Assembly: GCA_963924565.1 (NCBI GenBank) | Contig: OZ004613.1 | Coordinates: 23,064,001-23,128,000 of the forward strand | From: Ascidiella aspersa | Taxonomy: Eukaryota | Reading direction: 5' to 3' | DNA length: 64,000 nucleotides | Shown: one piece after another, positions 315-62,220 of the stretch | How positions within the stretch are numbered: position 1 is the stretch's first letter | Layout: each line of letters begins with the position of its first letter | The notes under the pieces: generated by a model | What the model was told of the DNA's origin: nothing | What the model saw: the letters and a program-made list of their open reading frames with translations, nothing else | Databases searched by the model: none | Translations under genes and position numbers: made by a program

Positions 315-803
315 GGGACAAGTGCCCGTACCCGGAGCCCGGGGGCCTGGTGTTTTGTCGTCAAATAGCTGCCACAATAGAGAGTGACGTCACGCGGGCA
401 GCTCTCAAAGGGCCCTGGTCAGCGCGTGTGACCGACGGCGGATCGGTTTCGCCCGGCGCGCAAGTTTGCGCGATAAGGTTACCGGGCTTTGCACGCAAAT
501 GCGCGTCGATCGCGGCCTCTTGCAAACAAGCGGTCGGAAGTGAAACTTAAGATCGGCACACAACACGGAGCAAGTGGCTCCCCCCTTCATTTTAGCCCCA
601 CTCCGCACCCGGCATCGGGAACTTTGGGTTGCTGTTTAGGGGTACACGCGCCCACGTCTCTCTCGAAAGCCATCGGCGTTTAAAGGTTTAAGGCGCAGCT
701 GAAAAGAAATGCTGGGCTAATTTGGTGCCAGTCAAGCTGTTACCCGAGGCCGATCAACAGCTCGACGAGGTTTACGCCGAAGTGAACTCCAAGTGCCCGA
801 CTC
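315..803 (+). repeat. Mirror element A, left copy (inverted duplicate of 61735-62220); putative cis-regulatory module
   Basis: About 490 bp with roughly 20 differences (about 95%) to the reverse complement of 61735-62220. The ORF track shows the same spurious ORFs on opposite strands. Contains TGACGTCA, GATAAG and GGAAGTGAAAC. Confidence 0.95.
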
Positions 804-1544
804 ACTGCCCCTCTAACAACGGCTTGTTGCCCGGTAATTATTTCAACTTATCGAGGGTATTGTTACAGCGAGATTCCTCTTCTTTAACTTCTTTTTCAGG
901 ATGTTTCGACACTAGCATATTTGATTTTGACACCGTAAGCGCTTTGGTGGCCGTATGCAACAAAGCTGGTAAACATAACAAAAAAAAGGTAACAACTTTA
1001 ATTTTTATAAATAATTTCCTTCGACATATTTTCGAAAAAGTTCTGTCACATCCACGCATGCTCAGTTTTAAAACTACAAGCCATGAGTTTCATTTAAGGC
1101 GGGATACTTTAATTGGTACTTCACCAGGTAAAATTTGTTCAATTATTTTTGAAATTAGGCAATCTGATCCTAGTATATGTTGTACATAGAGATTAAGTCC
1201 AATGATCCTCACATAACCAATAAAATACGTTATAAACGTTGTAATGTGAAAGTTATTCAGATGTACCATAGAGACTTATTAAAGAAAGAACAGTTTTCCG
1301 CATCACCTTTTACATTTTACATCATCCGTTAACATGCGTATACAGAAGATACAAAATGGCGCCCGAACCTAACTGCTGTTTACTGTTCAGCACACATGGG
1401 TGCAGGGCAGAAAGTGTCAGAAGACAGCGCTCTCTGTTGCCTCAAAACAATGCTGGTGTGCGAAGCGCGGTGAGCGACCAAATGCAAGACACGAACGAGT
1501 AGAACCGGAATTCCTCTTCGCTGCCTTTTCGCCCAAATCCTCAA

Positions 1545-1791
1545 GATAATTTCGCTAATGCGCCAGTCGGCTTTTGCCGTTGGCCTGGGGTTTGCACTGG
1601 GGGCGTTGTAACGCGATCCCCGGCCAGCAATCGAGAGTGCTCTGGGCCGCGGCAAAGTCGTCAATTCTCGTCCGATACGAGGCAAGGCCTTCTATTCAGT
1701 CAGGGGTCGCACACGCCTGATTGAATTCCGCTTCCTAAACGCTCATCGCCGACAAGCGAGGCTGTCAAACTTGTAGTGCGATTTTCTCACG
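1545..1791 (+). repeat. Mirror element B, left copy (inverted duplicate of about 53804-54046)
   Basis: Core 1545-1745 has about 11 differences in 200 bp to the reverse complement of 53847-54046. Weaker motif-level similarity continues to about 2010 <-> 53590. Confidence 0.93.
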
Positions 1792-3059
1792 CCCCCGGTC
1801 CCTTATAACATTGCATATGTAGCTTTCCGCGCCGCTGTGCAATCGCTTCATTTTTGGAGTGCGAGTGATTCAGAGCTCGCGCCTAAGTCAACTCATCCTC
1901 CCCCAGGCCGCTCTACTCGCAGCAAGATTAAGCAGCGCGATTTCCGCTCCGGCTAATGTGGCTGGATTTTGTGTCAACTTGAAAACACCCGACCATTCGT
2001 GCTAATTGACCGCGTGAAGGGAGAACGTGTGTAGGTGTGTAGGTTATGCGTTTATGTATATGCGTGTGTGTGTGTGCCTGGAGAATCGACCCTTAGTGAA
2101 TCACAGTTGCACTTTGGCGGTGGGAACTTGTCCCGTGTATTTAGGGTGACAATAGACATCCTCTGACCCTGAAAAATCAAAGACGTTGAGCTGAATATTA
2201 TTCAGATACAACCAGCGATCCATGCAAGTGTAGCGTTTTATCTATAGCAACTGGATTTCATTACCTTGAAACTGATTTTCTGTTTTAGTGTGTAACATTT
2301 TTTCCGTTTAATTCACCCAAAAAGACAACCAACCAAATAAGTTGCTGTGTTTATTATTTGCCGAAAAGCTAACTCAAATATATATTATCAAGCTTTACAG
2401 ATTGTTTACTTATCTATTAACTTCAGTATTCAACAAATCTTAATTGTACATCTTCGAGGAACGGTTTTAATAAATTTAGTTAACCATTGGGGGAAAACCG
2501 GGACCAGTGAGCAACTTTTCAAACTTTTGCTCACAACTTCTGTAATTCTAAATCAATATGCCCAATTATTGGACAACTGGTGCTACTGTGTTTAAGGGTA
2601 GATTGTGTAGCAGTTTCAAATGATTTACGTTTAAACCGTTTAACTAAGAAGGCAAAAATCGGGGTATCTAAAATGGCTCAAGGGTCCCTCGTAGGCGGGT
2701 CCCTTGAACCACCATGAAGGGACCCATGAGACACGTGTATATTATGTAAGAATTATTTTTGCACTATAAACACATAACGTTTTTCAACGGCTTTGAGCAA
2801 ACAGACAAACGCTTGCACGGTTTACATATTAAAAGCAATTTTTTTAATGGCAAGTGTTTAAAGCTATACCTATTTGGCATTCTTACCTGCTGGAACTCCG
2901 TTTTTCAGAACAATTTGTTTTTGTTATTATTCACATCCAGCGTTTCGAATTATTCAGTGTTAATTGGTGTTATTATATGAACCAGTTTTGCCAATGTTTT
3001 TCACATTAGTTCTACTATCTCTGAAACGCAGTAGTAAAAAAGTATTTTTCGATTAAATT

Positions 3060-3205
3060 GTGGGGGAAGGTTGCCATAATGGGACACTTTTTTCAAATGA
3101 TTATAGTTCTCAGTTTTTACGATGATTTTAAATATTTTCATGCTTACTTGATTACTCTACCTTGAATTGACGTCATCGCGATGTCCCAAATCAGGCAACG
3201 TCCCA
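3060..3205. mobile_element. Short MITE-like element
   Basis: Imperfect terminal inverted repeats GGGAAGGTTGCCATAATGGGACA / TGTCCCAAATCAGGCAACGTCCC. Confidence 0.55.
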
Positions 3206-3859
3206 TTTTAGGGTTCACCTATGGTTTGACACATTATTGATGAATTAGGGGGCAACATGACACTTGGGCAAAATAGATTTGCTTCATATAATAAAAAATT
3301 TGGGCAAATTTTTAGATGATTTTCAAACCAATTTCAAATTGACCCCACAGCTGTATGGAATTTTCGTTTAGCTAAAAGTCATAGGACATATATGTGCATG
3401 GAAACGCAGAGTATAATACGCTTGTCCAATTAAGTAGCAAACGTTGCAAAAAATAGTTTTGCACCATTATTACAATAACCGACGTAAAAACATAAAAATA
3501 GGATTTACAAATTCCCCCCTTGAAACTTCGAAGTTCCCCCTAGGAGTGAATTATAGAACACCTAACACATGTATCCAGCAATAAATATTATGCTTTCTTT
3601 GGGGTAGCATATAAACCTTAGGCGGTATAGTTGAATACGACACGCTATGATAAAAGGTAGTGTTTGTTTTGCGATAAATTCAAGCAAAACCACAAAGGTT
3701 GTAAAAGAGATCCAAAAACAACTTTATTCAACAAAAGCAGAATACTATAGTTACGCAAAAAGCATCGTCAGTTCTGCTAATATACAACAAACACAACGAA
3801 ACACCAAAATTATATATAAATAAAATAAAATTTAGCTTTCCACAGTCAAAATATTGATG

Positions 3860-4255
3860 AAGGCAAGTCGGGCCCATGCGGAAAGTGTGCTTTGTGTGAC
3901 AATTATGGAAAATATAAAACTTCAATGGTTAACTGTTCTAAACAGCTCTACACTCCACAAGGTTATATCAAACTCAAACGCAATCTAACGTGTTCTAACT
4001 ACGGGATTTATGTCGCGACATGTAAATTATGTAAAAATCAGTATGCCGGCCAAACAAAAAATAAATTCTCTACCAGATGGACCGCACATAGAAACCATTG
4101 AAAAAGTTTGACATTTCAGGCAATAATGACCAATCTGCCCTCCTACGACACTACGCCACACATCACAGTAATGAACTATAAAGAAAAACCCCAATACACG
4201 AGTGTTACAATGTAACATTTGTTGCACAACCCGAAATGGTCCAGCTCGACTTTTT
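3860..4255 (+). mobile_element. Penelope-like retroelement relic, GIY-YIG endonuclease fragment
   Basis: Translation CGKCALC...LTCSNYGIYVATCKLCKNQYAGQTKNKFSTRWTAHRNH, followed after a stop/frameshift by NNDQSALLRHY. This is the Cys-rich GIY-YIG pattern of PLEs. No RT is present. Confidence 0.85.
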
Positions 4256-4265
4256 GTGATTTTCC

Positions 4266-4550
4266 TGCATTTGTCCTCAATTAAGGTTACGTCACGCGGT
4301 GTGACTATAGTTGAAATATCTAGAGGGGACGCTCAGAATTCCCTTTCCAAGGACGGCTTCCGGTTATCTGATCTCTAAGCTGTCGAAAAATGTTCATCCG
4401 TCAATGGAGGCAGCGAAGTGCGACCGTGTTGGGTTGCCACTCACCCAGGCCCCAGTCGCAAAGCTCGTGACAGCAATGGGGCGCGGGGCCGAACCCTGTT
4501 TGGGGTTGGGGGTGAAGATGATAGAGCGCAACATCTGTGGGCGAAGTGCC
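4266..4550 (+). repeat. Mirror element C, left copy (inverted duplicate of 50761-51059)
   Basis: Near-identical core of about 120 bp (gaattccctttccaagg...ggccccagtcg) with more diverged edges. Contains adjacent ETS-like TTCCGG and GATA-like TTATCT. Confidence 0.93.
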
Positions 4551-4639
4551 ATGAACAGCCACAACAACCAAAGGGCGGCGTGGTTTGCATAGCGGCAGGA
4601 GAACAGTAGGCTTCTACATCTGTAACGATAAGTCTGCCA

Positions 4640-5190
4640 GACTCCAGACATAAGACCGAAAAAAAACACATTAATGTCGAAATAAAACACAGTTTGGCAT
4701 AAGACCAAAATAGGACTAATACCTTTATTAGTCGTAATTACGTAGAAATAGAAATAAAGTCGTCGGAATAAGACCTAAATGGCCAGAATCAGGCCTATGT
4801 ACAACATTTAATCTAACCCAAACCACACCCTTAAGTACATTTCTAACTCCCCTAACAATTTCAACACTTATTTTTTAACTCAACTCATTACCTTCAAAAA
4901 ATCCCAAACAGGGCTAAAAATTTGGTTCCAAAACAGCGGCTCTAACGGCGCCATTTAAATTTAGGCGCCGTCAACACCAAACCGACCGATGCCAGACCCA
5001 TGGTCCCCGATCGCCACATGGCCTCTCCCTACAGTTCCAGGCCTTATTTTGGCCGTCTATGCCTTATTGCGATGAATTTAGGACTTATCCCGGCAGGGTT
5101 ATGTCTTATTCAGACAATTAAGTTATTATTCTGTCGTGGATATTACTGCACAAGTTGCTTTATTATGCCGTTGGTCTCAATACTATGTTT
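4640..5190. mobile_element. Foldback/non-autonomous DNA element with ATAAGAC-like subterminal repeats; partial direct copy at about 43960-44190
   Basis: Repeated ataagacc words on the left and (g)ycttatt words on the right. The segment gtcggaat(a/g)agacctaaatggcc...ccaaaccaca recurs at about 44038-44160. Confidence 0.55.
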
Positions 5191-5289
5191 TATGGATTTT
5201 TCTGCTTTAGCTATTGTTGCTTTTTACGTCTTGTGTATTGTATGGTCGGCCAACACGGCAATTGTTGCAACTAAGGATGAGCGCCTTTC

Positions 5290-5354
5290 TTCGATGATGA
5301 GCGCAACGCTGTAAATTCGCGCTTGGGTCTAGACTTTTTGCACGCAAATGCGCC
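5290..5354 (+). repeat. Mirror element D, left copy (diverged inverted counterpart at 49382-49456)
   Basis: Collinear blocks ATGAGCGC, TTGGGT and TTTGCACGCAAATGCGCC are shared with the reverse complement of 49382-49456. Confidence 0.65.
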
Positions 5355-8300
5355 TCTCAATCGGGCAATCGAGAAGGCGCCGCGGCGTGCGACGATAATT
5401 GGGAAACGCATGGCTTTCAGGCGGTTTTGCAAACAACACGAAAGAAAGAATTCATTTTTATTGCCAGCAAGGCTCGAAATATTTGCAAATATGTGCATTG
5501 TGCAGGTGCAACCTTGCGTTGTTCAAACCAGCGCACTACCAACAGGAAACAGTTTTGAGGTTTTTGTTGAAGTCTCTCATTGTTCGCGTCAAACTAGTGG
5601 CTAATCATTTTGGTAATATATTACAAAAAACTATACACTGGGCTTTGCACCACATATACTATATACATGTTTTGTAACACAAATTGGTTCAATAATACTC
5701 ATATTTTGTCTCACTATGGAGTCGGTTATCACAAGTAAAACTACTTTACCCTGAAAAAAAATTCCGTATACGGCAACACACACATGCGTACATTTCCAAC
5801 CCTGTTGAATTGTTCATAGGCAGTCACCTTAGCGCCCCTGAAACAATCGGGCAACCATTGCACGGGTGCGCTTGTTGCTGCAGATCGAGTTAACTTTGGT
5901 GCAAAGTCGGTCGGCTGTCGTGCGCTTGTGAATGTCAAGTGGAACGCGTAACCCGAAAATCCGGAAGACGCGCAGCGAATGCAGGTGAGGTAACACTATA
6001 TTGTCGACGAAAGTTGCCAGGTGCGCAGTTTCGGGTAATCGTTTGTCTCTGTTTGTTGGTTTGCACGTAGAAACGGTGATGAGGGGCATTCCAAAGGCCT
6101 ATGGTCATTCAGATTTTGTAGAAATATAGTTTTAGAGCAGTTGCTCATTATTTTACACGTCCAGTCGCCCAGTAGCCAATGGTTTACCAAACCATGTATC
6201 TGTACTAAATGGTTTACCAACTCATGTACTTTGAATCTCGGAAAACGAGTTCGGTATAAGCAATTCTATCGTATTAATATTTTTACAGTAAATTCAGGTC
6301 TAAAGACATGTTATGTCTTTCATTTTTCCCTAATATTCAGAGGTGAAATTGGAATAATTTTCCTACTGAAACGAATAAAAATTTCCTAGAAATGGCTTCA
6401 CAGAGTTACGTCATAACGTTACGTCATAAAACGAGTAACCTTACGCAACCTGAGCCAATATCTGACGATGTCGTGCACAAATGTTCAACAATGTGTGGCC
6501 TGGTAAAAATAAAACATTACGGCGTACTTGCTAGAATTATGTTACCGAAACGCCGTTTCGGACCGTTCTATATGCTTACTTTCACCGCTGTTAATATCGC
6601 TTTAGTCAACGCTGTTAATATTGCTTAAGTATAGCTCGTTCCACAGTGAACAGTTGTGTTCCCGGTCAGCTGTTTGACTCATCGCAAGGGTAATTATGTA
6701 TTGTTTCTGACTTGCAACATACTAGGCTTAAAGGGATTTATGGATGTGGGTGCCTTTTCAAATCGATTTATTACAAAGTTCAACAGCGGACTTCAAGACA
6801 TGTTCGTGATTAGCGCGATAATGTTAGTTAATTGGGGTTCACAATAGTGCCAATTTTTAAAACGTTAATGTTCTGGTTACTTTCATCGCTGTTAATGTTG
6901 TTTTAAGTAGCCCGTTTCACACTGGACAATGGTGTTCCAGGTTAGCTGTTTGACTTTTTACTACACTACCGACTTTAAAACGTAAAATATGTTTTTATTA
7001 CATTTTGCTAGAAAAATGTTTATAGAAAATGTTTATATCACGTACGACCCTATCAAACAACATATCCAAACAAAATATTGACCTCAAACAAAAAAGGACA
7101 TGGGACAATCAAACAAAATAATACATGGCTTAATGAGGCATTCCCCAATAAGTGTGTTACAGGGAAACCCGGCAACATTGCCGTTTTACAAAGAGACGAC
7201 TTCTCGTTAAACGAAACGAAATACTCTCTGCCAGAGCTGTCAAATTAATTTGAAATCGGCGTTGGAAGACATGAGATTTGCAGTAAAACTATACGTTGAA
7301 CCTTGCAGCAATCGGAGCGGGAACTTTAGCAGGCAGTTTCGCAACCTGTCTAGGTGCTAGCACGTCAAACGAGGCTGATTGCCAGCGCAAAAGCACAACA
7401 CAACCCTTGTAGTCGTTTTCCGCTTGCAACATAAAACCTTCACGCAGTAGGCCCTATGCGCTTAAGTCGGCACTTGCTTTCCCGGAAACGGCACTTTGCA
7501 GGTGTGTGCGACCTAATCAGCACGCCCTGCAATACTAATTAAACACCAAACGGTCAATCCTCATTTTCGCAGCAATCTCGGTCAAGCACAATTGTAATAG
7601 CTTGTTGTTGCAAAATTCTGTTGGCAAGATTGCGTTTAGTGACTTTGTTTTATGCCACCTTAATGAATATCATAAAAAGTGCATCTTAGCAACGATGTAG
7701 GCCTATTCAAATTTCAAGATGATAGAAGAGGAAAGATGGATGTCTTGTCCATCTGAAAAAATATGGTATGTAGAGATTTCAAATAAATAATATGTGTTTT
7801 AAATTTGGTTGAAGTTAAACGGATCCAGCAGTTCAGTGTTAAAATGCAAAAGCTACATTTTTAGATAAAGTAATTAACCTCGTTAAAAATGTCGGTTTCG
7901 GGCGGTAGGCTTCAACATGTGTTGCTAACACAGGAAACCTATCAAGCTAAGTCGTAGCAAAAATCAGTCTTTTATTGTTCTGTGACATTGGCATGGAGTG
8001 TGCTCCATTATAAACTTTTTCTTTGATCGGTTCAAAGCAGTAGTATTCAGAAATGAAAAGAAAAAGAAATATTGATAAGAAAAGACAATATGTTTAGCAA
8101 CCTTTAAAAAATGCGAACCAGCCGTGTTTGTGACGTCAACATTACACAAAAATCGTGTTGCGAAAAATGGAGACTTAAACCGTAATTTGAACTAGATAGT
8201 GCATACTTCTGGCGCCAATCCGAACATTTTAGCCTTATTTTAAAACAATCCCTCTAGAAATGGGATCGTTTTCCCAATTTGAATTTGATTAGAGTTATAA

Positions 8301-8623
8301 CGCTTTAGGATTAAGGGATCACTTAACTTTTCTTAAACTAAATAGGGGTATAGTAAAAGCAAAAAGTCAACAAACACTGGTAAATAGGTAAAGGGATGTT
8401 CAGCGTAATGCTGCATTGTAACTAAAGGCCTTGGGTAGGGCAAGGCACCTGGTTAAACTTTTTTAAATGCTACCGATTCTGTTGTATACGGTGTGTTGAA
8501 AACACGTATATGGCAAAAGCCCGTTTTTGTATTTTGCTACATGGCTATTCACGCCGGCAACTTTACAGGGGCCAAAAATCGGCCAAACTCCCGTGTAAAT
8601 AAAAATCATATTTGGAGTTCAGT

Positions 8624-8982
8624 GAATTGGCAACCATAACAATGCAAGTGCGGGCCCAAGCTGAGAAAAGGACTGTTCCGGCCATCTCTAGTCGGTCGCG
8701 AACGCGTAGAGATAAGGGAGCGCGGGTTGGCGAAAAGACAACTTTCTTATCTGTTGCCTGCTGTACACCTTTGTCCACTCAAGTGTTGACTGCTATTGTC
8801 GCGCGAAGCAAGTTATCGGACACAAGTGGGGCTTTTGCGCGGCGCTTGGCCTGCTTTCTCCCCTGCACTTCGCGGACACAATTGGCCCGAGCCTGCTTTC
8901 CTGCCGCGATCGGTCATTATCGCCACAAACAGGTAAATACGGTGTTTTCGAGAGGGCTGATTGGACTGTTTTTACTTTCTCG
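8624..8982 (+). repeat. Mirror element G, left copy (inverted duplicate of 33478-33855)
   Basis: Core 8636-8695 is 58/60 identical to the reverse complement of 33783-33842. Further collinear blocks: AAAAGACAACTTTCTTATCTGTTGCCTGCTG, GTGTTGACTGCTATTGT, GACACAAGTGG, CTTGGCCTGCTTTC, GGTCATTATCGCC and ACTTTCTCG. Confidence 0.92.
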
Positions 8983-11900
8983 ACTTGTCCCAGCACCTGA
9001 GTTGCCAAGTGATTCCTGATCAAACCAGCTGCGGCGTTCGATATCACAACAGCGGTTGACAGGCGTGAGATTCATTTTCTAGGCAATGTTTGACTTTTCG
9101 CTAAATCGGACAAAACTCCTTGAAAAAAAAATGGATGATTTTACGCTGATTTGACACCAATTTGTGGACAATAGCCGCTATTCAACACCACGACAGGAGA
9201 CATACAGACGCTTTCTAACACAAGGCATGATTAATATGGATGTGATGTGTCAAGTATAACTTTTTCCATTGCATTGGTCAAGATGTTAGATATTATTGCA
9301 ACTGTAAGATGCCAATGTTTTTAAATATTTGTCTTTGTTCAATATATTTTACGTTGATGAGCACACCAGGCCTTTTTAAAAATCCGCTTTTGGGCGCTAA
9401 AGATCCCTCATCGTTTTTCTTTTGCAACAGATAAACTGTAGGCACAGACTTTATCAATGACTCCACAGTATAAGCTAAAAATCTCCCATGATAAAATTCG
9501 AAATAATAGTTCCTACATTTACCATCTTGGTAAGTTCAATACATGCTTTGTTTAGTTACTTACCAACGTGGCCTAGTTGTTTTAACGACGTTACTTAGTA
9601 TTCGAAAAATTTCCTCTAATTTAATTTAATTTTTATGTTGGAACGTGTATGGTTTATAGCGTAACAAATATTTGACATTACAACACCGGACTGGTCTATA
9701 TCTACGTTATTATAATGTTACCCAATCATTAAATAAAGTTGCTAAAGCAATATACTCGCTGACTTTTTTTGGATTTTGAGACGTACTCCTAGTATTAAAG
9801 GACATATTCCAGAAAAACAGTTCCTTTTGTTCTTTTCTGAAAGCACCTCTAATTCCAAAAAGTTCGATGCTCACTCTTTTTATATCAGCAAAAAATGACC
9901 ACGCACCCATTGCGTTCAATTTTTTTATGCCATCAAAAAGTTTCGAGCCCTGTCGGCGTTCTCAAAGTTTCATAACGCGCGATGAAAACCCACATATCGA
10001 GTATACACGAAAAGAGAAATCAAGGGAGCAATTGTCGCAAACCCGTCTGTAGCCGTTTTGTTTGAAGTGCGCCTTTACAATAATCCGGGGGGTGACGAAC
10101 AATAACCCAGTTCCCGCGTCGCGCGTCCGGTTCCCTAAGAGTGGCACTCTCGCGCTTTGCACCAGGCACAGGTGGCCCCAGTTAACAGTCACCCCTCGTC
10201 ACTTTGTGGCCAGCCGTCGCGAAACAAATTCGATAAAGCTCGAGTACAATTGTAGCCTGGCCCCTTGAAAAATGACAGGGCCGTTTATCGCGGCAGCGCA
10301 GTGCAAGTGAAGGGCCTTTCGAACTCGCCATCACACGGCCCCGCTTGAGTCCACTCCTCGGCGCACTGGTCGTCTATTTTTTGATATCGGGAAGTTGCTC
10401 GCGCGACCAAGACAAACCGACTCGAGTGCTTCCTTTCTACCCCCCCCAACTACCCTAAAAAAATGCCGCGCGCGCACCCCTTGGATACTCTCTCACGGCG
10501 TGTTGTGCAACTGCGTCGAGTGCAATTGATTCGAGTCCGACACAAACGCGCACACTTCAGATATAAATGTATACATATATTTTTATATGTGCAAGGTTTC
10601 GAAATGAAATGGAATTGAGAGGGATCTGGTGAGCACACTCGAGCGAAACGTGTCGTCTGCGCGAACAAAGTTGACGCGTGTTGAATTGATGCGCCGTTGT
10701 GGTCTTGGCCGGCTTTGTAACATCTGTGGGTCGTCTGAACTGAGCCAAGGTCAAAGACGCCTCGACTCTTTCGGCTGTTTGTTTTAATTTCTCATAAATA
10801 GGGATGCGATACTGTAGATTTTATTCCGATAGCGATACCCGATAATTTTGACTAACAGCATCGCGATCCCTTCCGATTAATAGTGACGTCATGGCTGTGC
10901 TTTAACAGGCAAAATAATAAAGAAAAAACGTTCAAAGGAATTTTTCTACCAGGTTTTTAAACCCAAAATTATTTTAGCGTTAATAAGTTTAGTTACCTTT
11001 AAATAGGTTGTGTATCAACTATTTTTAATTTATTCACATGTCAAGGTAGAATCGCTGCGATGGATTACAAATCACGCCCAAAATTGGAATATTGTTTGTT
11101 ATAGGATCGGCACCGATATTCAGCTCCTCTGGTAAGTGTAATTGTTAAACAACGTTTCGGCAACCATGTGCAAGTCGCCTTCGTAGGCTGTTTTTTATTT
11201 ATATTACCATGCCTGGTAGCAACAGTTTATATATTGGATACCGAGACTGTATTAGGCCTAATAAACTTAAATTCGCTTTACGCCTCTATGGGTAACTCTA
11301 CATTTTCTGAGGTTCATCAACTTCATTAGGGTCCAGCTCCGGCCACCAAACACATATCCAATGGCTTCGGTTTGGTAGTGGTAATTTTTTAAATTTCCAA
11401 CACAGGCTTAATTAAGTTACATTTGTCACACTAAACTGTTTAGTAGTTTTCATGTGAGCAATTTAGAATTCTTGAACGGATAACAATTTTATAGCTTCAA
11501 CTCTCAAACTTTACAAATGGCTATACGACTCCAGCTCAGGCTCAACAAAGAAAATAAAAATGACTTCGGCTGCGGTTAAAATGCTTGGCTACAGAGTTCC
11601 CGCCTTCAACTTCGACTCTCCAGTCCTACATTTTACTCGCATGTTATCCAGGTTCTGCAAATTGGTTAGTGCACAAACTGTAACATGAAGTACAAGAAAT
11701 GCTCCGAAAAAGCCTGGTTTAACATATTTTTAAATGGAAGCAGTTTTTGATATGTTGGATCTGTGGTTCTCACCCTTTTGCTGTCGCGGCGACCTTTTAC
11801 AAACTATACGACCTCCCAATTTGGTGTATTGTACATGAACATTAACCAGATTTTAATCATAATATACAATTTGTCAAAATATTCTCATTTTTATACAGAT

Positions 11901-13307
11901 TGTTTAAATTTGGCCAGAAAAAGTTAAGTGTGGAACAATGTTGTTCCGGAAAACGTCATAAACACGACTGGTTTACTGTAGCTAAATGATTAACATAATT
12001 GCTAAAAGCGTCGGTTGCTCATTTATTGATAATTTATAATTTGTCTATACTCTATATACTTGTTTGTTTTTTCTTGCCATTTTTTCGTTTAGCAAATAGC
12101 ACGGCGGTTGGCCAATCGTTAGACTATCACTAGAGAATGCCATTTCTTTTAGGATGAAACAAAGCTGCAAGAACTTGTTGCCGTTTATCTCTGGTGCTTT
12201 CTAATTACTTAAATTGTTTTTAAATTCTTTTTAGAAGTATTTATTTTTCATTAAATTATGCAAAGCAAAGCGTTGTTGTTTGTGGCTGTATTTCTATGCG
12301 GATGACATTCAGAGTTAGCTAATTGATATGACCACAGTATATCATAACTGGTTTTGTAGCATTGTACTCGCAGAAATGCACAAAAAACAAGAACTTTTCA
12401 ACATATTATAAACGTTAACCTACCATAAAATAATGAACTATTGTATGAAATAATGAGTTATTTTTAGGCTCCTAAAATGTCTTCTGTTGTAACACGCGCG
12501 CAATTATTTTACGCTGAGTGTTTATCAATGAGTTTCTTGGCACTTTGTTCGATTTGAATTTTACATCCGATCACCACAGACAAGTGGCACCGTGATAATT
12601 TGTGACACATTTCTTTAAACGCTTTATTACTGAGAGCTATTAAAATGTATTTTTCGAGGGCCATCGAGCACCGACTGTCGCTATATAAGTAGTTCGAAAA
12701 ATACGCACCGGGCTATTGATTAAATCGGACTTTTTCATGTAATTTGTTTCTCTTATTTTTCTCTCCCCTGACGTGCGACGAAAACAAGTTTCGAAAAATC
12801 CATAATTTCAAAACGAGCACCAGTCAAGTGTCAGTTGCACTTAGACTAATTGAGTTTCTTTTTGAGTGGCCGAGGTGTGTTTCCACGTCACTTGAAAAGG
12901 CCAAATGTAGCAATTCCCAGTTGCGTTTGCATTTTTTAAAAGTTGTTTGAAATGAACCAACGACAATAGGCCTATTGTTGTTTGCCACGCGCCTGATCGA
13001 ACCGCCCGGAACACATGTTTTCGCGTTTGTAAGCAAGCCCACGCCACCACGCCGCCGGGAAGAGTCGCGTTTTAACGCTTTTAATGCCATCCACGCACCA
13101 CCACCAGCATCGAAATAAAAAAGACGCGGGCGCCGCTGATTTACATACACCTGCTGCTGCGTTGCTGACCAGAAATGTCTCGTGACCGATTTGGATTCTG
13201 CAGGAGGAAACGGGGTTGCCACAGCTGCTGGAAAGACACGGTTGCTTGAGGAGCGAATCAGCGAAGGCAGAAGATTCGACGCGGCGCTGCCTAGGTTTAT
13301 AGTATAG

Positions 13308-13565
13308 TTGGTCTTAACCTATTTCCTTGCTTCACACCTTTAAAATCATCAAACAATTCCCGCACCCCTTTTCAATCACCAACCAATCCTCGCAGTTTTT
13401 TATGTTTATACACGAAAATGATAACACATTAACACAATGCAGTGTGAGTTAGTTTTACATTTAACTGGGCAAATAAATAAATTACGGTAATATATTTTCT
13501 ATGTCTCATTCAGCATCCTCGCATCCCCTTGGAGCAGTTGTCGCACCCCTGGTTAAGAAACCCTG
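13308..13565. mobile_element. Degenerate hAT-like MITE
   Basis: Ends ...ggtcttaacct and ggttaagaaaccctg, with internal cgcacccct repeats. Confidence 0.55.
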
Positions 13566-13808
13566 GTCTATAGCGAAGCACTAGCCCGGTTGACGCGTCT
13601 GTGTTGGCGGTCGGCGGATGATCTGTGCAGCTATTTTAAGTGCACAGTTGTTGCAAAATGCGTCTTCTGACTTCCGGCCGTTGCAGCGCGTTCGGTTATC
13701 TGATTCACCCGGACTTCGACAAGTCACTATACTGTCGTTCAACCGCGTTTTCCCCTCAACTCTGTTCTATTTGCGATCCGAAGAAGGTAGGTCCACTTTA
13801 GGCCTATA

Positions 13809-13812
<4 letters not shown>

Positions 13813-13887
<75 letters not shown>
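13813..13887. repeat. (TG)n microsatellite, about 37 units
   Basis: Uninterrupted TG run. Confidence 0.98.
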
Positions 13888-13888
<1 letters not shown>

Positions 13889-15831
13889 ATGTATATGCAT
13901 ATTCGATCACCCGATGTGCAACTTGTTTACATGACTCGTAGCTAGCAATGACGTCGAAGAACAACTACACGAATTATCTATTTCCGTCTGTTTTTGCTGT
14001 CACGAGGCTGATATGTGATAGACACAGATACGAAACGAATTTACGTATGGCTTTACGCACATATATGTCTTATCGATTTGCTTGTAAAATGTGAAATTTC
14101 AGCATGTCATATAAATATCAGTATATTCCACGCTTCCTTTGTCATATACCCTAAACTGGAACATCTATCGATATGTTTATTTATATTTAATGACTTTAGT
14201 CATTTACGAAGTAATCGAGTATTTTTTTATGAGAAAACAACAAATACCTATTTTCATTTAACTACAAATAAAATAAAAAAGTGACATTCGTTGTGAACTT
14301 TCTAATGTTTAACTTGCACAACATTTCTGCTGTAATGCGCATGGTACCGTCACCAAAGGGTGACTTTCTGAAAATTGTTCTTCTGCACAAATAAATGATT
14401 GAGATTATCATATCATTTTTTGGCTCGGTAAATATTTTTCTGTCTATAGCCTATAGATATCTTAAAATTATATTTCGCGGATTTTTAACATTTGAAGCTG
14501 TAATGTGTTTGATCTAACGGGCCTCCGCAGTTGTTTAACCAAATGCCACCTCTCATAGTTAAGCAAAATTATCGATAACTATTTGTTTGATAACAAATGC
14601 TGAGCCACTGAAAAGTGAATCTTAATTTGGAAAACATCGATTATAAAATTTTGTTTGCATTCTAAAAGTCGGTTTCTATTTTTTGTATCGCTTAGATGCT
14701 TTATCCCCACCTTGCTAAAACGGAGGCTGGTACAGGTGCCGGAGAGGGTTTGGACAGCTAACACACTTTTGAGCTGGATTGTTTTTTCGACCATGTATAT
14801 TTATTTCATTTCGATGACTCTCGCGCACTTTTAAATGTCGGATACTTCCGGCCGGCGGTTGTCACTTGCATGTCGCAAACAACATGAATCACATGTCGGT
14901 CCACTTTTGCCTTGCACCAAAATAAATTGGCGATTTATTAAGATAGCACGTGTTCCTCGCAGACTTTTTGGACAACTATAGATAATTCTAGTTTTCTAAT
15001 TCGATGATTTAGAGCAAATTTCGACTAAATCTAATCTAATTTGTGAATTGCCTGTGTGCTCTAATTTTAGTTCTAATCTATATCGGATTTTTCGAAAAAC
15101 GCTACTTTTTGCAACGGAACTTTAAGTGACTCAATCCTAACAAAGAATTTGAATTAAATCACAACTCGTAGGCGATTGTTACAGCCTGAATAGCATGTAT
15201 ATATAGGCTTTTTTAAAACGTGAAGAAATTAGCACAGAAATATTTGCCGTTTACATTTTTATCACAATCAAATGCGATTTAAACTAAGCTGATTGTGAAC
15301 ACATTTAATTCTAATTCAAAACTCTATAGTTAATATTTTAATTTTCACGAGTTCAGCAATTCAAATTATAATGTAATTTAAAAACACTTGAAATGATCTA
15401 ATTCTAATATATTTTTAAAAACGAAAATCTTTTAATCCTAATTCTAATCTAATTAAAAAAGAGAAAAATAAATCTATCAATATGTTTGCACGTCACCGTT
15501 CACTTTTTCACGCGTTGTTTTGAGTTTCTTCCTGACTGAGTACGCGATTCTTATTTCATTAAGTGTTTGCTTGTGTTTTGTGACGCACAATTTTGGATAC
15601 AACCAATGGATCCGCTTATTTTACCAGTTGGATTAAAGCGTCATGATCTGATCATTGGCCACTGGCAAAATCACTCCTCTTTCGCAGTTTGTCTAGTTGC
15701 CTGAAGTATGTTGACCGCAACTGTTTTGTGTAGAATGAAACTTTACAAAAAGTCCTCTACCTAAAACAATATAAAACTCAGTCGTTCTGTGCATTAGCAT
15801 GGAAATTTGTCCGAAAGTGTTTTGGGTATAC

Positions 15832-16264
15832 CAGTGGTTCACAACCTTTTTAGCTTACGGACCGGTAAAATTTCAAAACAAATTTTGCGGAACGGTGGAG
15901 CTTAATCAACCCAAATTCAAATCAACTCCAAAACAAGAAATTCAAATCAACCCAAAATTTATTAACGCAACAGGCAACTAAATACACTTCTAAGCTTTCT
16001 CATACAACTGGTCTTAAAGTTTAAGACACGAGTTGTAGCCTACTTTTAAACAGTTGGCCAAAAACTTGCAGTATTGTGACGTACAATAAAGTCAAAATCA
16101 ATTCTATGTTACGTCATAATGCTGCAAATTGCGGAGCTGGCGAAGTTCAACATTTCATAGATAAGGCATCAACATCTTGAATTTTGCAATTGAGATACAA
16201 AATTGTAATATATTTTGCGGGCCGGCAGGAAAGTTGACGCTGACCGGCGGTTGAGAACCACTTG
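15832..16264. mobile_element. hAT-like MITE
   Basis: TIRs CAGTGGTTCACAACC / GGTTGAGAACCACT. Confidence 0.75.
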
Positions 16265-17495
16265 TGTATAGCACCAACTATAATTGTATGTCAAAAAAGT
16301 TTCCTTTCAAGCAATTCCTAGGCCTAGGGCAATATATGACTTTGAACCATTGGCGGCTGTAATAGTTAGAACAAGGCTCAACTTTGGGTCACCACCGCTT
16401 TGATTTTTGGGTCATCACCGCTTTGATTAAAAATATTTTCAAGATAAATCTTTTTCAAAAATGTTATCATAATATATGTAATAAATCCATTTCGTCTAAA
16501 AATCTTACGCACTAAACCCAGTTAAAAAATTATAAAATCCGTAACGTTTTATGTTGGAATAAGGGTCGGTCAATTTGTGACAAAAATTTGTGGCTTATGA
16601 TAAAATGAGATAATATAAAACAACTAAACCTTTTGATAAAAATAACTTGAAGTTTCATCTTAGTCTGAAGAATGTTTTTTTACGTAAAAGCGTGCGTCAT
16701 GTTTCTTGGCAAAAAAAAATTTTTTTTTGGAAAATATACCCGAACCCAAAGTTATTTAGGTGTATTATGTGGGATACTTCAGTTATATTTCTCCTAGTGC
16801 CAGTAAAAAGCCTACTAAAAAGGTTGAGAATCATTGTTTAGCTAGGTCATCGATTCATAATAAAGCCGTAAAAAACGAAAAGATTAAAACTGTTTAAGTG
16901 ACTTTTCAGTGCCTGCAAAATGCGGAAACGTGCGTCTCAAAGTTTATTTTTTGACACAAACAAGCAACCGACCGCTGAACTGTTGCAGCAGGAAAACAGT
17001 TCCTTATTCGTCATTTCGCATTCCAGAAACTTGTATGGTAATCGGTTCCAGAGTGCTGTCCGATACACCGGTGGGCGTTAATATACGCGTCTTAAAATGG
17101 CTGTAGAATGTTACGCGTAAGACAGCGCAGCTGGTTTCTTTTTATTTTTGTTGCAGCCCACATATTCTAGAATGCTCCTTACACGCAGACACTGATAACT
17201 AGCTAATTTTAGTTGACTAATGTGTATACTTCCTCTGATCTAATTTTTCGTTTTCAACAAAAACCTCACATGGTGCAACGGTGTTTTTAGATTTTCCATC
17301 GATACAAATTTTCAGCTGCACGTGAATTAAACAGTCAAAACTGCGAATTTTGTTTTTCTAATCTTAGACATCCCCATAACTATAAAACCATGCGATTTAA
17401 TTATATAATTTGTTAAATTAATTAAATATGCTAGTTCATATTTTTTAGTTAAATTTGTATATTTCGCTGAGATATTTAAGACATTTAATTTGAAA

Positions 17496-17975
17496 CAGTG
17501 GGACTCAAAGGTTTTCTTTGCCCGACCCCCTTTTAAATTTTCCTCCATTCGGGCATAGAAACCAGTTTGCAATCATTATATTATACAAGTTGACAAAATG
17601 TTCATAATTTCTGGGTTAGGATATTCCGATTTACGACAGAAACGTGCACAAGTAACGGGAGTTATTTTTTAAGGTTTATTTGCGCCTTAACTTTTTATTC
17701 TGAAAGATTAAAATGTATTGTGTTCAAGTGACGAAACAACAGAAGATTGGCTGTCGTAAGACAGTAAGTTACTTAAACAAAACAATAAGAAATAATTTAC
17801 AAGTTTATGCCAAGTAAAACTAAAGAAATCTTAAAATCATTAAAAAATATTTTATAGCAGTATTGTTTACGTACGTCTTTAAATAATTAATTGTTCATCT
17901 ATTGTGACAAATAGCCCACGGCGACTACCCTGACAACCTATTGCGTCCCTTGTATGTCGATACCTCCGACCACTG
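17496..17975. mobile_element. Degenerate hAT-like MITE
   Basis: Starts cagtgggactcaa, ends ...gaccactg, with an internal cgacccc. Confidence 0.45.
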
Positions 17976-44190: not shown

Positions 44191-45682
44191 ACTATATGAT
44201 TTTTTAGATTTTTCTGCATTGTCCTTTTTTGTCTTATTGTGTGTTTCCTATTTAACCTTGTTTTTTAACCGCCCCTATACTGTGTATATGTGCCTCGTCT
44301 ATCGTATTTTATTCTGATACAGATACCCGATGTTTTGGGCAATGATAGCAATGACATCGTCGCTGCTACAAATAACCAAATTGATAAAACCAAAACTTGC
44401 ATATGCGATGCTTTGAGGTTATTGGGGACTATATGCCTCAAGTTAAGTTTCCGTCGACTGTTAATTCACGATTTTCTAGGAAATTTAATTTCCAAGGCTT
44501 ACAACGTTGCTTCAGTTGGCAAACTGTGGCTTAAATAAACAAACAAATTTCGTGCCGCTTCACCAAGCAGTGAATATACCGCTCGTCATCAGGTATACTG
44601 TATAGATAGCTATATGACTTCCCAACTCTATGCTGGCCTCAGCTTATCAATCGAATCGTTTGATTTACACTATTTGAATGCAATATGGCAACAATTTAAT
44701 TTCCAGTTTTTTATCTATAGCATAAGTTGCTACTTCAAGGCTGTCACTATAAGCACATACTTTAAATGCATGTTAAGAAATAATCTTTTAGGAAATTATT
44801 AGTTATCGTTAATCAGTAATCGCAAGTGTTCCGAGCATTTTCAGTTTTTATGTGGAATTCAGAGGGTCTATAGACGCCTTAAAGGTATTCTGCACAAAAA
44901 TGATTAATAAGATTTGCGGCAAGTCACAAAATAATGGCTGCGTTTCTACTGTTTCGCGGAAAGATGGTAAAAATAATTAATGACAGGGTATACGTATACA
45001 CATTTAAGCTTTCCGTCGTTATCTGCACGGTTAGTTGTTTGAGAAACTCATGTTGCATCTCTACAGGTAAAATATGAGTGCATGTGACAGTCCGATTCAA
45101 CATGCAACCTCTGGCCTTTTTGACGTTCCGTTATTTTTATTGCTCTTCTATATTACGAAGAGGTGCAGGATATTAATCAGACGGCAAATGATTTGAAAAA
45201 ACTGCGAAATAATCCAACCATGGCCACTTAAGCGGCGTTTCCTCACTTTGCAATTGAACCCCAATCGTGAACGTGCAGCACACCAGTCTGTACAGTCGTT
45301 GGTACAATATTACATCAGCGGCTTTATTCAACAGCTCAATCGAAATTGCGCGAAACTTGTTTTAACGGTGCGAAAAAAAGTGGCGAAACAGGCTCGACTG
45401 TTCTCAGCGAGGCACCGAATGGGCTGGTGGGCGTGAGAAAGCGGCTCGGACACTTGTTGATGTCCAAAAATTTAGGAAGCGGAATTCAATCAGGCGTGTT
45501 CACGAGCCCGAGACAAGCCTGATGATCTGCGGCGCGCACCGAAAGCCTGTTTTCCAAGCGAACTTTTCGTTCGAGTGGCGTTTTAGCGCTATACTCGCTC
45601 TTGCCGTTTTCACTGAACGAGAGTATAGCTTGGGCCATATGTTTCAAGAAATCGACAATTTTGGATAAATCGACAAAAAAAT

Positions 45683-53803: not shown

Positions 53804-54046
53804 CGTGAGAAAATGACAAACCGGTGCGAGGGGACACTTGTTGGCTTGAGCGTTTAGGAAGCGGAATTCAATCAGGCGTATGCGACCCCTGACTGAATAG
53901 AAGGCCTTGCCTCGTATAGGGCGAGCATTGACGACTTTGCCGCGGCCCAGAGCACTCTCGATTGCTGGCCGGGGATCGCGTTACAACGACCCAGTGCAAA
54001 CGCCCGGCCAACTGCAACAGCCGACTTGCGCATTAGCGAAATTATC
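53804..54046 (-). repeat. Mirror element B, right copy
   Basis: Reverse complement of 1545-1791. Confidence 0.93.
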
Positions 54047-54111: not shown

Positions 54112-54730
54112 CACAAGTGTTGGCCCTCTCGCGCTAACAAGGATGCGTCTTGATGAGCCTGGTTTTGAACTTGTTGAACATTTTCGAAGAAGCGAACACC
54201 TCTAACTTATATTATTTGTTTAATTTAATGTATTTTATTACCTCTCCCGATTTAATGTGTTTGTACACAAGTGTTGGTTCGCTTGCGCTAACGAGGATTC
54301 GCCTTGATGAGTCCAACATTTTCAAAGGAGCGAACACTTCTAACTTTGAAAACGAATAATGTATAATATGTAGTTTTATTACCTCTCTCGATTATTGTGT
54401 TATTCCCTGTCGATTTAATATGTTTCTACACAAGTGTTGGCACGCTCGCGTTAACAAGGATTCGCCCTGATGAGCCTGGTTTTTTTAACACTTCTAACTT
54501 GGAAAATGATTAACGTATATGTAGTTTTATTACCTCTGTCGATTTAATGTTTTTTCTTTGTCGATTTAATGTGTTTATACACAAGTATCGGCTCGCTTGT
54601 GCTGAGAAGGATTCGCCCCGATGAGCCTGATTTTTGATTTGTTGCACATTTTCGAAGGGGCGAATATTTTTGATTTTGAAAATGAATGATGTAATGTAGT
54701 TTTATTATATCTGTCAATTTCAAGTGTTGT
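54112..54730. repeat. Degenerate tandem repeat, about 4 units of 140-163 bp
   Basis: Units start CACAAGT at 54112, 54266, 54429 and 54580. Each contains aggat(t)cg...gatgag and ttttatta blocks. Confidence 0.85.
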
Positions 54731-55029
54731 TCTCTCACGATTAGTGAAGTAAGTGTTGCATCCGAATTACACAAAGCTAAGCAATCCATTCGACTTGACG
54801 TTTTCTGAATTAACATATGTCAGCCATGTAGCGACGACCTTTCACAGAACGCAAACTATTTCCACTTACCAAGGGTGATTTCGCGACGATTTAGAGATTT
54901 CTTATTATGTCTTACTACAACCTCCAACCATTATGCTCCAAAGATTTAGAGATTGTTTTTCGGAACGGTCGAAATCTCCCACAAAAGCCCCCATTGTCCA
55001 AAATCCAAAACTTGGTCCGAAAACTAGCG

Positions 55030-58000: not shown

Positions 58001-61000
58001 TTCCAGGCAAAAACGCGCTCAAGTAAAAAGAACTGTGGCTCATGAGAACCAGATTTTCATAAAAAGATCATAAAATTGCCAATGTCCGCTATTAATGAAA
58101 AAACTAATCGAAATTCTTTTAATATGTTATGTTTATGTGGTGTGGTGTGTGTGACGTTATATTTACCAATCCTAACGACCCAACATATTTTCTGACCATG
58201 TGTTACGATTTATGCTTAATGTTAACGCAAATCACAGTTTTCGCAAGTCGGCGTGGACAGACCAAATTTAAAATACAACTTCAAATCATACTTTTTTTAT
58301 TAAAAGCATGGATGTTGTTTTAGTGATTTTAAATTGTGTAGGCGTACAACATATTTTAAAACAAATGCCTTGAATTCCTAGCTAAAATATCTGAAATATT
58401 GAAATTAAACGTCTTACGTGCAAGGACCACATTTTGTCAACTGTAAGTCGTCGACAGTGACTTTTTGTAAATAGTTTAATCGAAGCGTTTAACCACGTAT
58501 GCCAACTTGAAAACCTGCGAGCAACAAATAGAAATAACTAAAAAAGAAAAGTGAATCGCAAATTGCTCGTTTTCGAGGGCAGGGCAAACAATCGGGTGCA
58601 CAGCGCCATGCCTGTCGATTAGTCATGTCGCCCCATACCTGCCCAGTAGAGTTCTTATCTGACAGGCAATTAAGCCAACCGCTCATGGAGGCATTAAGAG
58701 CGTCAGGTGAACGAAAGTTGCCTGCGCTTTGCTGCAGCAGCAGCATCGACAGTGTCGAAATGTTTGCTCGCCTGTCAATTGCTATCGGCGGCTATTGACT
58801 CCAGGCAAACCCCGCCTGTCGACCGGGCGAGCAAAATTGTCAACTGTTGGTTAAAGCCTGTTTGCTGACGCGGCCGCAAAACGGAAAAGTGCTACCAAAT
58901 TATGACGGCTAATTGCCACCGCGAGCGCCCGGTGTGCCCGTTTTCTGCTTAAATATTAATTTCGCCATGGCATAGCGAAGGTTCGCGTTTCTTTGTTTTA
59001 ACGCGTTGTCGATATAGTGATTGCAATAGGGCCACGGACCGGGTTAAACTACTAAAGGTTATCGGAATTCGGTGTTGGTTTGTGTCAATCGTTTGGACTT
59101 CGATAACCTCACCTTTAAATAGCTTCAACGCCGTGTTTGTCGTTGTTGGCTGTACTTGTCTGCTTGAATAATATAATTAACCTTTCTAAAGGTTTCCTGC
59201 AAATTCTGAACTTTTCCGTTTTATTTTATTGTTTAATTCTTCATTAGGCTATTTCTTTGTGTGCCTTCTATATCGACTTCCAATCAGTATATGATGCATT
59301 GCAACTGTCATCTGTTCACACAAAAAGTTGTGAAATGTCCAAATTTAAATTAAACAAGACACCAAGTGAGAGAAACTGTCAATCAAGTAATGCGAACAAC
59401 TTATTCAAATGCCAAGTATATGCGGGGTTTTAAAACACTTGTATGCAAGTTGCATTAGCATGGGAAGCTTTGTACAATTAGGCTACTTTATTGAGGTTAA
59501 CAATTGCTAAACAGAAATCCGGTAGCTCTCAGAGGAAACGAATGCAACTCTTTGTAACAACAGGTATATACAGACTACAACGAAACATGTAATAATTCTT
59601 TAAAAGCAAGAAACAAAACCTTTATTTAAATTAACTTAGTTCACTTGACCTATACCACTCAGTTTTGCCTATGTGCGATATCTGGGCCTGTTTGGATGAG
59701 AACAAAAATTTATCTTCGGGATGTATGGCAATCCTACTTTTACGCGGTCTTAGACAAAAATAAATTAGGCTTATCGCAATCGAAATTCCAAACTGGTGAC
59801 AGTGGATAATTTGGCATAAAATAAAAGCTACTTTCCATTGTGTTAAATCATTGATTTTCGACCTGTGTTCCATGGAACATTAAATGTCTTACAAACAAAT
59901 TTCTCGTGGAACACCTGACGATCTTCCACGTAAAACGGTTGAAAATCATTGTTCTAATGTATTTAACACTGGGTTTCGTTGGGAAACATGATTAATTAAA
60001 ATTTCAAATAAAAAAATGGGGTCAGTGGCTGCTTAAAGGGCACCAAAATGGATCCGCCAAGGCAAATAGTGTAACAGCCACTTCTCGAAAGTTGAAATCA
60101 AATATATACCGACCCGTCGTTAAAAAAACGCGCGCTAAAAACGAGGGGATCACAGCAAACGGCGAAAAACACATGTATTGCATGATTGGCGCCTGGCCCA
60201 TTTCGACGAAAGTTTTCGACGTCGACACTCGACCCAGTGGCCTTTCGCAGAACTGCGAGCAGGGCGCATTGGGATAGCTCCATAAACCGATCAATGGCGC
60301 GCTGGTACAGAGCTGCCTGGAATCAGCAAGACGCGTATCTGCGAATCTGCCCGTGCAGATCTCAGGCGCGAGGCGCGGCAAGAAATCCAGGCTCTGATTA
60401 ATAGCTTCCGTCGTTGGCGCGCACTACTTTGCTTCTCATTGTCGCAAACGGATGCAAACGGCACCCCTCCTCCAATCAGCCTCGTAATATGCCCTTATTG
60501 AAAGCGCGCCAGCGAAAACCCTTCTCCGAAAGTGCACCATTTGTTTCTCCCGCGATTTCGGCTAGGGGCGCGAAAATATTGCCTGCCGCGTCTTGGAAAG
60601 CTCATTATCTTGTCTGTCAAACGCCGGAGCCCCTTATGGGAGCACTTGATGTCCTTTCCTCTGTGCCAGAAGCCGAGCGTTGCAAGGCAAGGCGAGGATG
60701 CGATATTCGCTCACTTCCCCGAAAGACGTCAATAATCTGGTTGCACTGAAAATACATCGGTGCTGATTCTGAATGTCATATGCTGGTCTATGTTTTGTTT
60801 TTCGCTTTATCAGAATGCCAGCTTTGTCAAACCAAACACCATCAAGCCTAGGCGTCAAAACTACTTTGATTCATTTGTTCGATTATAAACTATTGCAGTT
60901 AAAATATCCATTCAGTTTTTAGATAATATTTAACCCAAATAGTGTATCTATCACTTACTTACTTTCCCGCGCCCCACGTAGAATAGTTAAAGCAATCCAC

Positions 61001-61734
61001 CATGTTATTCGAACAAAACAATGTGCATCTAAATAGGACAACATTAACATTCAGGAAAGGCCAAACGATAAGCGTTTAATGTTGTATACGAGTTGATCTA
61101 TCGTAGTCGTACCTATCCCATAGTATTGCTGAATAAATGTTAGACATTCCATTAATTGGTGGGCTTAAACTAGGCATTAATGCTGTTTTGTTGAACTCAA
61201 ACTTGACGGGTGAAGAAAAGACATGGTATGGATATGCTGTATGGACTACAGTTTACCTTAAAGTGATAAGTCTTGAAGGTTCAAAATATAATTGAAAATA
61301 TATAGGAGTGCTATGATTATCGTATATAATAAATGGTTGAAGATTTAGCTGAAACGACTGCCACCTGAAGATGTTGTCAGCATAGTTTTCCCATACTAGG
61401 CTCGGAATACTTTTAGTGCGTATATAGCTATATTTCAAAACTATATGTACGCCACAAACAATGTAATATATAGTATTTAGAATTTCGCTTTAGAAAGCAG
61501 GCCGTATTAGTTACTCGGCTTAAAAAGGTCAACGAAAGATCGCCCAATCTTTCAAGGTCAAATGCCAATCTTCTGGGCGAGGACTTGGCCGCCTTCTTGC
61601 GCGCCAAGGTCAAGTGGACGCGGATGCGCGAACGAAAAGGGGTATTTCAAGGTCACCCGACACCGGCGAAGGTATTTTTCAACGCTCAAGGCGCGATTTC
61701 GACCCGGTTTTCTGCTGCAAAAGAGTCTCTTGGC

Positions 61735-62220
61735 GAGTCGGGCACTTGGAGTTCACTTCGGCGTAAACCTCGTCGATCTGTTGAACGGCCTCGGGTAACA
61801 GCTTGACTGGCACCAAATTAGCCCGGCATTTCTTTTCAGCTGCGCCTTAAACCTTTAAACGCCGGCGGCTTTCGAGAAAGACGTGGGCGCGTGTACCCGT
61901 AAACAGCAATCCAAAGTTCCCGATGCCGGGTGCGGAGTGGGGCTAAAATGAAGGGGGGCACTTGGTCCGTGTTGTGTGCCGATCTTAAGTTTCACTTCCG
62001 ACCGCTTGTTTGCAAGAGGCCGCGATCGACGCGCATTTGCGTGCAAAGCCCGGTAACCTTATCGCGCAAACTTGCGCGCCGGGCGAAACCGATCCGCCGT
62101 CGGTCACACGCGCTGACCAGGGCCCTTTGAGAGCTCCCTGGGTGACGTCACTCTCTATTGTGGCAGCTATTTGACGACATAACACCAGGCACCCGGACCC
62201 CGGGGACGGGCACTTGTCCC
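61735..62220 (-). repeat. Mirror element A, right copy
   Basis: Reverse complement of 315-803. Confidence 0.95.

Follow-up and report, generated by a model that had tools for sequence, protein, structure and literature searches.

A 64,000-nucleotide stretch of the Ascidiella aspersa genome (assembly GCA_963924565.1, contig OZ004613.1, positions 23,064,001 to 23,128,000 of the forward strand; this whole stretch is referred to as the window, and its coordinates are used below) contains five pairs of short, GC-rich, non-coding islands that are arranged as a mirror image around Prdm1-r, a Blimp-like zinc finger (BZ) gene. The array is best explained by a probable ancient segmental duplication, in inverted orientation, of the distal Prdm1-r upstream region, from which discrete modules survived as candidate regulatory elements.

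The pairs were detected by an inverted-repeat scan and by self-BLAST of the window at word size 7, and both methods recovered in place the four clear inverted pairs of the original prediction. The outermost, island 1, comprises a left copy at 315-803 (plus strand) and a right copy at 61735-62220 (minus strand, distal upstream of the gene); it aligns over 489 nt with 95.9% identity, includes a perfect run of 170 nt, and at either end its 96% identity falls to random within a few bases. Island 2 pairs 1481-1856 (plus strand) with 54111-53749 (minus strand) at 78.6% identity overall, rising to 97% in the core (1600-1745 versus 53847-53992). Island 3 pairs 4249-4550 (plus strand) with 51079-50761 (minus strand) at 82.9% identity over 321 nt, with a core of approximately 94 to 97% and a perfect run of 123 nt. 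Island 4, the innermost, pairs 8627-8937 with 33851-33518 at 67% identity overall and is a mosaic in which blocks of approximately 96% identity are split by indels of 11 to 43 nt; its copies extend over 8584-8937 (plus strand) and 33940-33518 (minus strand), the latter approximately 2.1 kb upstream of the start codon. Three further, motif-level pairs had been proposed. One of them, 5318-5354 (plus strand) with 49418-49382 (minus strand), is a genuine small fifth pair (local alignment score of 25, reached in 0 of 200 shuffles, which averaged 12.2 and did not exceed 17), and a 17-mer of its left copy recurs in island 1. The remaining two, at 6.0/46.0 and 7.4/39.1 kb, were equalled by 182 and 174 of 200 shuffles, respectively, and are background.

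Across the pairs, core identity amounts to 94 to 100%. The GC content of the islands is 0.54 to 0.585 (0.585 in island 1) versus 0.37 to 0.425 in the spacers. All five pairs are inverted and all are strictly nested, for which independent insertions would give a chance of (1/2)^5 x 1/5! = 1/3840. This orientation and order had been predicted, as had the compact left arm (about 8.7 kb) and the expanded right arm (about 28.7 kb), and these descriptions apply to the five pairs found here.

Copy numbers were counted across the window's own assembly of 308.6 Mb. Islands 1 to 4 each gave exactly two genome matches, the island itself and its partner, which is the result that the original prediction had anticipated for a genome-wide BLAST; because each is exactly two-copy, the islands do not constitute a repeat family. 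The genome contains a 23-mer of the island 2 core at three sites, all of them within the window and identical to one another, the third being an unmirrored copy of the deeply conserved part of this core at 45430-45498 on the minus strand. The 17-mer common to island 1 and the fifth pair occurs exactly four times in the genome: the left arm has two plus-strand occurrences and the right arm two minus-strand ones. As a positive control for repeat detection, the gap at 9 to 26 kb yielded 8561 first-look candidates, with 350-bp families present on every chromosome.

The spacers between the islands do not align between the arms at word size 7 and E values up to 50, and the weak hits obtained were balanced between direct and inverted orientation (50 versus 42). 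They contain a few dispersed elements and consist mostly of unique sequence, for which reason a recent duplication merely broken up by transposons was rejected; being unique and yet unalignable, they indicate that the duplication is old. No continuation of the mirror past the outer pair was found in 20 kb to either side, nor did a dot-plot of 326 kb reveal further pairs. Neither terminal inverted repeats nor differing flanking duplications were present at the island edges. On the non-aligning spacers and the lack of such marks of transposition the earlier description proved accurate. The remaining inverted hits in the window, at 24.3, 41.5 and 49.7 kb, are members of one ordinary family of dispersed repeats.

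Every island carries stop codons in all six frames, so that an origin as exons of a duplicated protein gene was rejected, and protein searches of the islands gave no similarity besides the DNA self-match. The edges show no consistent AG/GT in either copy or orientation. Searched against Rfam, the window gave no hit at the gathering threshold and the surroundings of the left islands none at E values up to 0.1, and the RNA folding of island 1 was no better than that of shuffled sequence (z = -1.0 and -0.4 on the two strands); known RNA families and stable folds were rejected on these grounds. An identical 10-mer, CAAGTGCCCG, lies 4 nt inside both edges of island 1 in both copies (319-328 and 790-799, mirrored at 62207-62216 and 61739-61748). 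These are the sole four occurrences in the window, where 0.03 were expected, and they may reflect the way in which the element or a conversion tract is delimited.

The gene between the arms was characterized by protein homology searches that were run exon by exon. It occupies 27999-31440 on the minus strand and has five coding exons with approximate ends at 31440-30328, 29840-29610, 29245-29099, 28798-28613 and 28145-27999, onto which residues 1 to 646 of Phallusia ZF(C2H2)-46 map collinearly by tblastn. Homologues of exon 1, which is single-copy in the genome, include this Phallusia protein, Ciona zinc finger (C2H2)-46 and "Blimp-like zinc finger protein 1" (BZ1); the exon carries the invariant N-terminal blocks of these proteins, and its start codon aligns with their residue 1. 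The finger exons encode Blimp-type C2H2 fingers together with the conserved motif that precedes them, and are 92 to 97% identical to the Phallusia and Ciona proteins. A PR/SET exon was not found in the window with PF21549, a profile that detects PR exons elsewhere in the genome; the lack of a PR domain is expected for ascidian Prdm1-r/BZ genes. By these homologies the gene is assigned as the ascidian Prdm1-r/BZ orthologue.

With the gene on the minus strand, its upstream region is the right arm (33.5-62.2 kb). The 5' set and mirrored 3' set of the original prediction therefore stand in modified form, with the expanded right arm on the 5' side and the compact left arm as the 3' copy. The left arm (0.3-8.9 kb) lies 19 to 28 kb beyond the 3' end of the gene and is oriented as for a plus-strand gene starting at approximately 9 to 11 kb. 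Mirror symmetry thus predicts a plus-strand paralogue in the central gap (8938-27998), which contains ordinary dispersed repeats. A vestigial paralogue at 9 to 26 kb was sought and rejected, as tblastn and Smith-Waterman scores remained at background (the island 4 control scored 106 against a null maximum of 15), and left island 4 contains no homology to the promoter or to exon 1.

An independent view of the right arm came from a distant tunicate. In one metagenome scan, three Joint Genome Institute (JGI) contigs with tunicate host DNA were found to carry a Prdm1-r relative with 31 to 33% identity over exon 1; they are 98.7 to 99.3% identical to each other and probably derive from a single species, as different haplotypes or individuals. 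Contig Ga0210059_1000258 (L015, positions 1 to 10000) provided 10 kb of upstream sequence, and this matches the right arm at three collinear non-coding blocks (reversed-sequence control, E about 0.3). Over 78 nt, the island 2 core at 53814-53889 shows 77% identity to L015:1108-1182, a segment that precedes the orthologue by 8.9 kb and is oriented towards it as the core is towards Prdm1-r, and the copy at 45430-45498 is 82% identical over 72 nt to L015. A further outgroup match, at 33431-33541, overlaps the inner edge of right island 4, and a promoter-proximal block at 32111-32215 (minus strand, GC 0.61, approximately 0.7 kb upstream of the start codon) is 72% identical over 106 nt to L013-L015. 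Because the right arm is collinear with the outgroup upstream region, it is the ancestral, orthologous set, and at least island 2 is an old conserved element tied to Prdm1-r. No inverted islands were detected in the 21 kb covered of the outgroup locus, a range too short to reach a left-arm equivalent.

The outgroup also indicates that the two arms are unequal. Left island 2 matches the outgroup in 34 of 36 nt, and in the first half of the element only, whereas the right-arm copies keep 70 to 75 nt. The left copy of island 2 is thus partly eroded, and for that reason the sets of the two arms are not equivalent. Several stretches of the right arm have no mirror: the block at 32111-32215, the segment 33431-33517, the 45.4 kb copy and many GC-rich blocks. 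The proposal that the complete cis-regulatory landscape was duplicated consequently fails, while its other half, an old inverted duplication from which discrete modules survive, is retained. The unmirrored GC-rich blocks (0.55 to 0.61) lie at 36.3-36.9, 38.8-39.6, 43.6-44.0, 48.9-49.5 and 51.4-51.8 kb and further out at 52.7-53.1, 54.9-55.4, 57.3-58.0 and 60.1-60.7 kb; they could be extra regulatory modules or unannotated exons.

The high identity of the island cores is unevenly distributed. Mismatches are clustered, leaving perfect runs of 170, 123 and 62 nt (P = 0.003 to <0.0001 versus a uniform spread). The 62-nt run belongs to island 2 and lies outside the part that this island shares with the outgroup or with the 45.4 kb copy; deep constraint alone is therefore insufficient to account for the identity of this island. 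A process that can produce such tracts is evident at the protein-coding part of the locus. Although the gene had been described as the single Blimp-1-like gene, which is correct within the window, a second Blimp-type zinc-finger gene is located on the plus strand at 216.4-217.9 kb, 152 kb beyond the right end of the window and 187 kb from Prdm1-r (L018:445-561 and L018:1662-1847, equivalent to C7:23280445-23281847, plus L017:8999-9634). It shares with Prdm1-r only finger exons 3 and 4, and its N-terminal exon is unrelated. In exon 3 the paralogues have diverged at 22 of 117 nt, with changes in 15 of the 39 third positions; exon 4 differs at only 2 of 186 nt, both third positions, with a perfect run of 165 nt and with identity ending at the splice sites (exon 4 versus exon 3: binomial P = 7e-11, Fisher P = 6e-6). 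At the level of nucleotide sequence, this pattern marks exon 4 as an exon-limited gene-conversion tract between inverted, otherwise diverged paralogues. The second gene lies between an SH3-domain exon (L017:2317-2973) and a WD40 exon (L018:7375-8484).

Because the exon 4 tract resembles the islands in being sharp-edged and in the 150 to 500 nt range, conversion was rated a likely contributor to them; we judge it somewhat probable that conversion adds to island identity on top of selection. GC-biased conversion was considered as the cause of the island GC content and rejected, since unduplicated conserved blocks reach 0.59 to 0.61 and two of the three outgroup elements 0.54 to 0.58.

The motif content of the islands was tested with eight motifs in all islands against 300 dinucleotide shuffles. 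GATA sites were found five times in the left set versus 1.0 expected (0 of 300 shuffles) and, less clearly, three times in the right set versus 0.7 expected (13 of 300 shuffles). High-affinity ETS sites and cAMP response element (CRE) sites were weakly enriched in the islands, and the shared core of island 2 carries two adjacent GGAA cores on the reverse strand. In ascidian embryos, Prdm1-r is among the earliest zygotic, FGF-timed repressors, and in Ciona FGF induces Prdm1-r.a/b by lifting repression by ERF, Foxa.a being the activator (PMC10069452); Foxd-bound upstream peaks of Ciona Prdm1-r contain Fox, Sox and Gata motifs (PMC5453608). The motifs of the islands would be in keeping with this published regulation, a correspondence that is suggestive only.

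Taken as an inverted segmental duplication, the array would have arisen as follows. The right arm (33.5-62.2 kb) would be the original 5' regulatory region of Prdm1-r, and the left arm (0.3-8.9 kb) an inverted copy, unaccompanied by any gene, that now sits on the 3' side of Prdm1-r. The neutral DNA separating the modules would have diverged past alignment, while five discrete GC-rich non-coding modules persisted, most likely as predicted cis-regulatory modules (enhancers or silencers) of Prdm1-r. Since the core identity of 94 to 100% exceeds what constraint alone would be expected to maintain, ectopic conversion between the inverted copies is probably at work, upholding the cores and limited to stretches still similar enough to pair. 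That both mirrored sets act on the one gene and evolve in concert through recurrent conversion over distances of 25 to 61 kb is a more tentative proposal, which we consider possible and somewhat doubtful on present alignments. If true, it would represent concerted evolution of cis-regulatory modules within the landscape of one gene, with no duplicated gene involved.

Several observations weigh against the duplication of regulatory modules upheld by conversion. Within the 10 kb of upstream sequence from the outgroup, islands 1, 3 and 5 found no counterpart, and conservation between species was seen only for the core of island 2 and the edge of island 4. The motif enrichment is weak once the eight tested motifs are allowed for. 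GC-richness is common to unduplicated conserved blocks and gives no pointer to biased conversion. The indels between the conserved blocks of island 4 look more like constraint than conversion, and in one genome the effect of conversion on the islands is inseparable from that of very strong constraint.

The alternative that survives best holds that the left arm is functionally dead, its islands persisting solely because they are overwritten by conversion from selected right copies, so that there would be no 3' shadow set. The missing second half of the ancestral element in left island 2, the several right-arm conserved blocks that have no left copy, and the lack of a gene or promoter beside the left arm all fit this account, and conversion is active at the locus, as exon 4 documents. 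Opposed to it is the retention of five separate modules in order across 8.6 kb; in addition, the mosaic of left island 4 with its conserved blocks is the pattern expected under selection on the left copy. We regard a dead left arm as unlikely. Were it inert, the array would be a decaying duplication partly kept alive by conversion, which would be of modest interest.

Less probable still is that the islands belong, as exons or promoters, to non-coding transcripts missing from the annotation, either a mirrored pair of long non-coding RNAs or one long transcript forming double-stranded RNA. Their sharp, exon-like edges and lengths of 150 to 490 nt would suit exons, and the exon-limited conversion tract of exon 4 looks alike. 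The absence of consistent AG/GT at the edges, of any Rfam family at E up to 0.1 and of folding beyond shuffles (z = -1.0 and -0.4) argues against transcripts, as do the internal indels of 11 to 43 nt in island 4 and the core of island 2, which resembles clustered transcription-factor sites; we consider this explanation improbable.

Independently inserted low-copy mobile elements, or chance similarities, could be suspected from the 10-mer inside both ends of island 1 and from the ordinary repeats that abut left island 3. Independent insertion is effectively refuted by the exactly two genome copies per island, by the five inverted and nested pairs (approximately 1/3840 by chance) and by the island 2 core upstream of the orthologous gene in another tunicate, and the explanation as a whole is very improbable. 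An assembly artefact, a fold-back or a haplotype mis-join, is hardly credible, because fold-backs are contiguous, near-perfect palindromes, whereas the copies here differ by 4 to 33% with indels, the spacers are unrelated, unique and of unequal length, and neither the window nor its flanks contain runs of N.

With an inverted duplication of regulatory modules as the preferred explanation, the array can be compared with known systems. Vertebrate duplicated conserved non-coding elements (dCNEs; PMC1896008, PMC2781166) are likewise ordered non-coding modules with diverged DNA between them, beside a developmental transcription-factor gene. They accompany two retained paralogues, usually on separate chromosomes after whole-genome duplication, whereas here the two sets are mirrored in cis around one gene; their usual identity is also far below that of the island cores (96 to 100%). 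The islands share with dCNEs their non-coding nature and low copy number, and lack a paralogous gene for each copy set. Shadow enhancers (PMC7556877) similarly consist of two separated sets of similar modules in the neighbourhood of one gene. They are defined by overlapping activity, whereas the islands are known from their sequence, and they usually have common inputs without alignable sequence and form no mirrored array.

Interlocus gene conversion, including that of non-coding DNA (PMC2720389, PMC1274310, PMC3924837), produces sharp-edged tracts of near-identity like those described here, where it is seen directly for exon 4. The known cases concern genes and their immediate flanks; the candidates here are isolated intergenic modules 25 to 61 kb apart, lacking a coding partner on one side, for which we infer conversion. 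Palindromes with arm-to-arm conversion have inverted, collinear arms, as found here, and contiguous homology between the arms, which is absent here. The closest relative by gene family is the local multicopy cluster of Ciona Prdm1-r.a/b/c on chromosome 12 (PMC6836712), which also arose by local duplication, a sign that this locus is prone to it, and whose paralogues have common expression and FGF/ERF/Foxa.a regulation (PMC6836712, PMC10069452). The duplicated units in Ciona contain genes, with start sites approximately 18 kb apart, while the upstream duplicate in A. aspersa is gene-less. What sets the array apart from these known kinds is thus a mirrored, gene-less, in-cis copy with near-identical cores.

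The locus amounts to a natural experiment in which five matched module pairs are placed at very different distances from one promoter and in opposite orientation. In an electroporatable chordate, enhancer redundancy, independence of orientation and distance, and conversion of regulatory DNA would be directly testable with these pairs. The retention of the island 2 core between lineages whose exon-1 proteins are approximately 31% identical is, moreover, uncommon in fast-evolving ascidian genomes.

A few further features of the window and its surroundings are recorded here. At 3668-4253, a young dispersed repeat that has copies of 95 to 99% identity on many chromosomes directly adjoins left island 3 on its left side, and an older repeat family (75 to 77%) lies just to the right of this island (4640-5255) and recurs at 43927-44172. 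Directly distal to right island 2, a tandem array with a 151-bp unit occupies 54112-54742; the unit contains a hammerhead-core-like CTGATGAG box, and a hammerhead was rejected as no Rfam match was obtained for the array. A second inverted duplication is present outside the window, where -84.8 to -71.6 kb pairs with -54.8 to -67.0 kb (window coordinates) in approximately 20 collinear inverted blocks of 65 to 92% identity, with arms of approximately 13 kb and a much denser pattern than that of the islands, which shows that inverted duplications recur in this neighbourhood.

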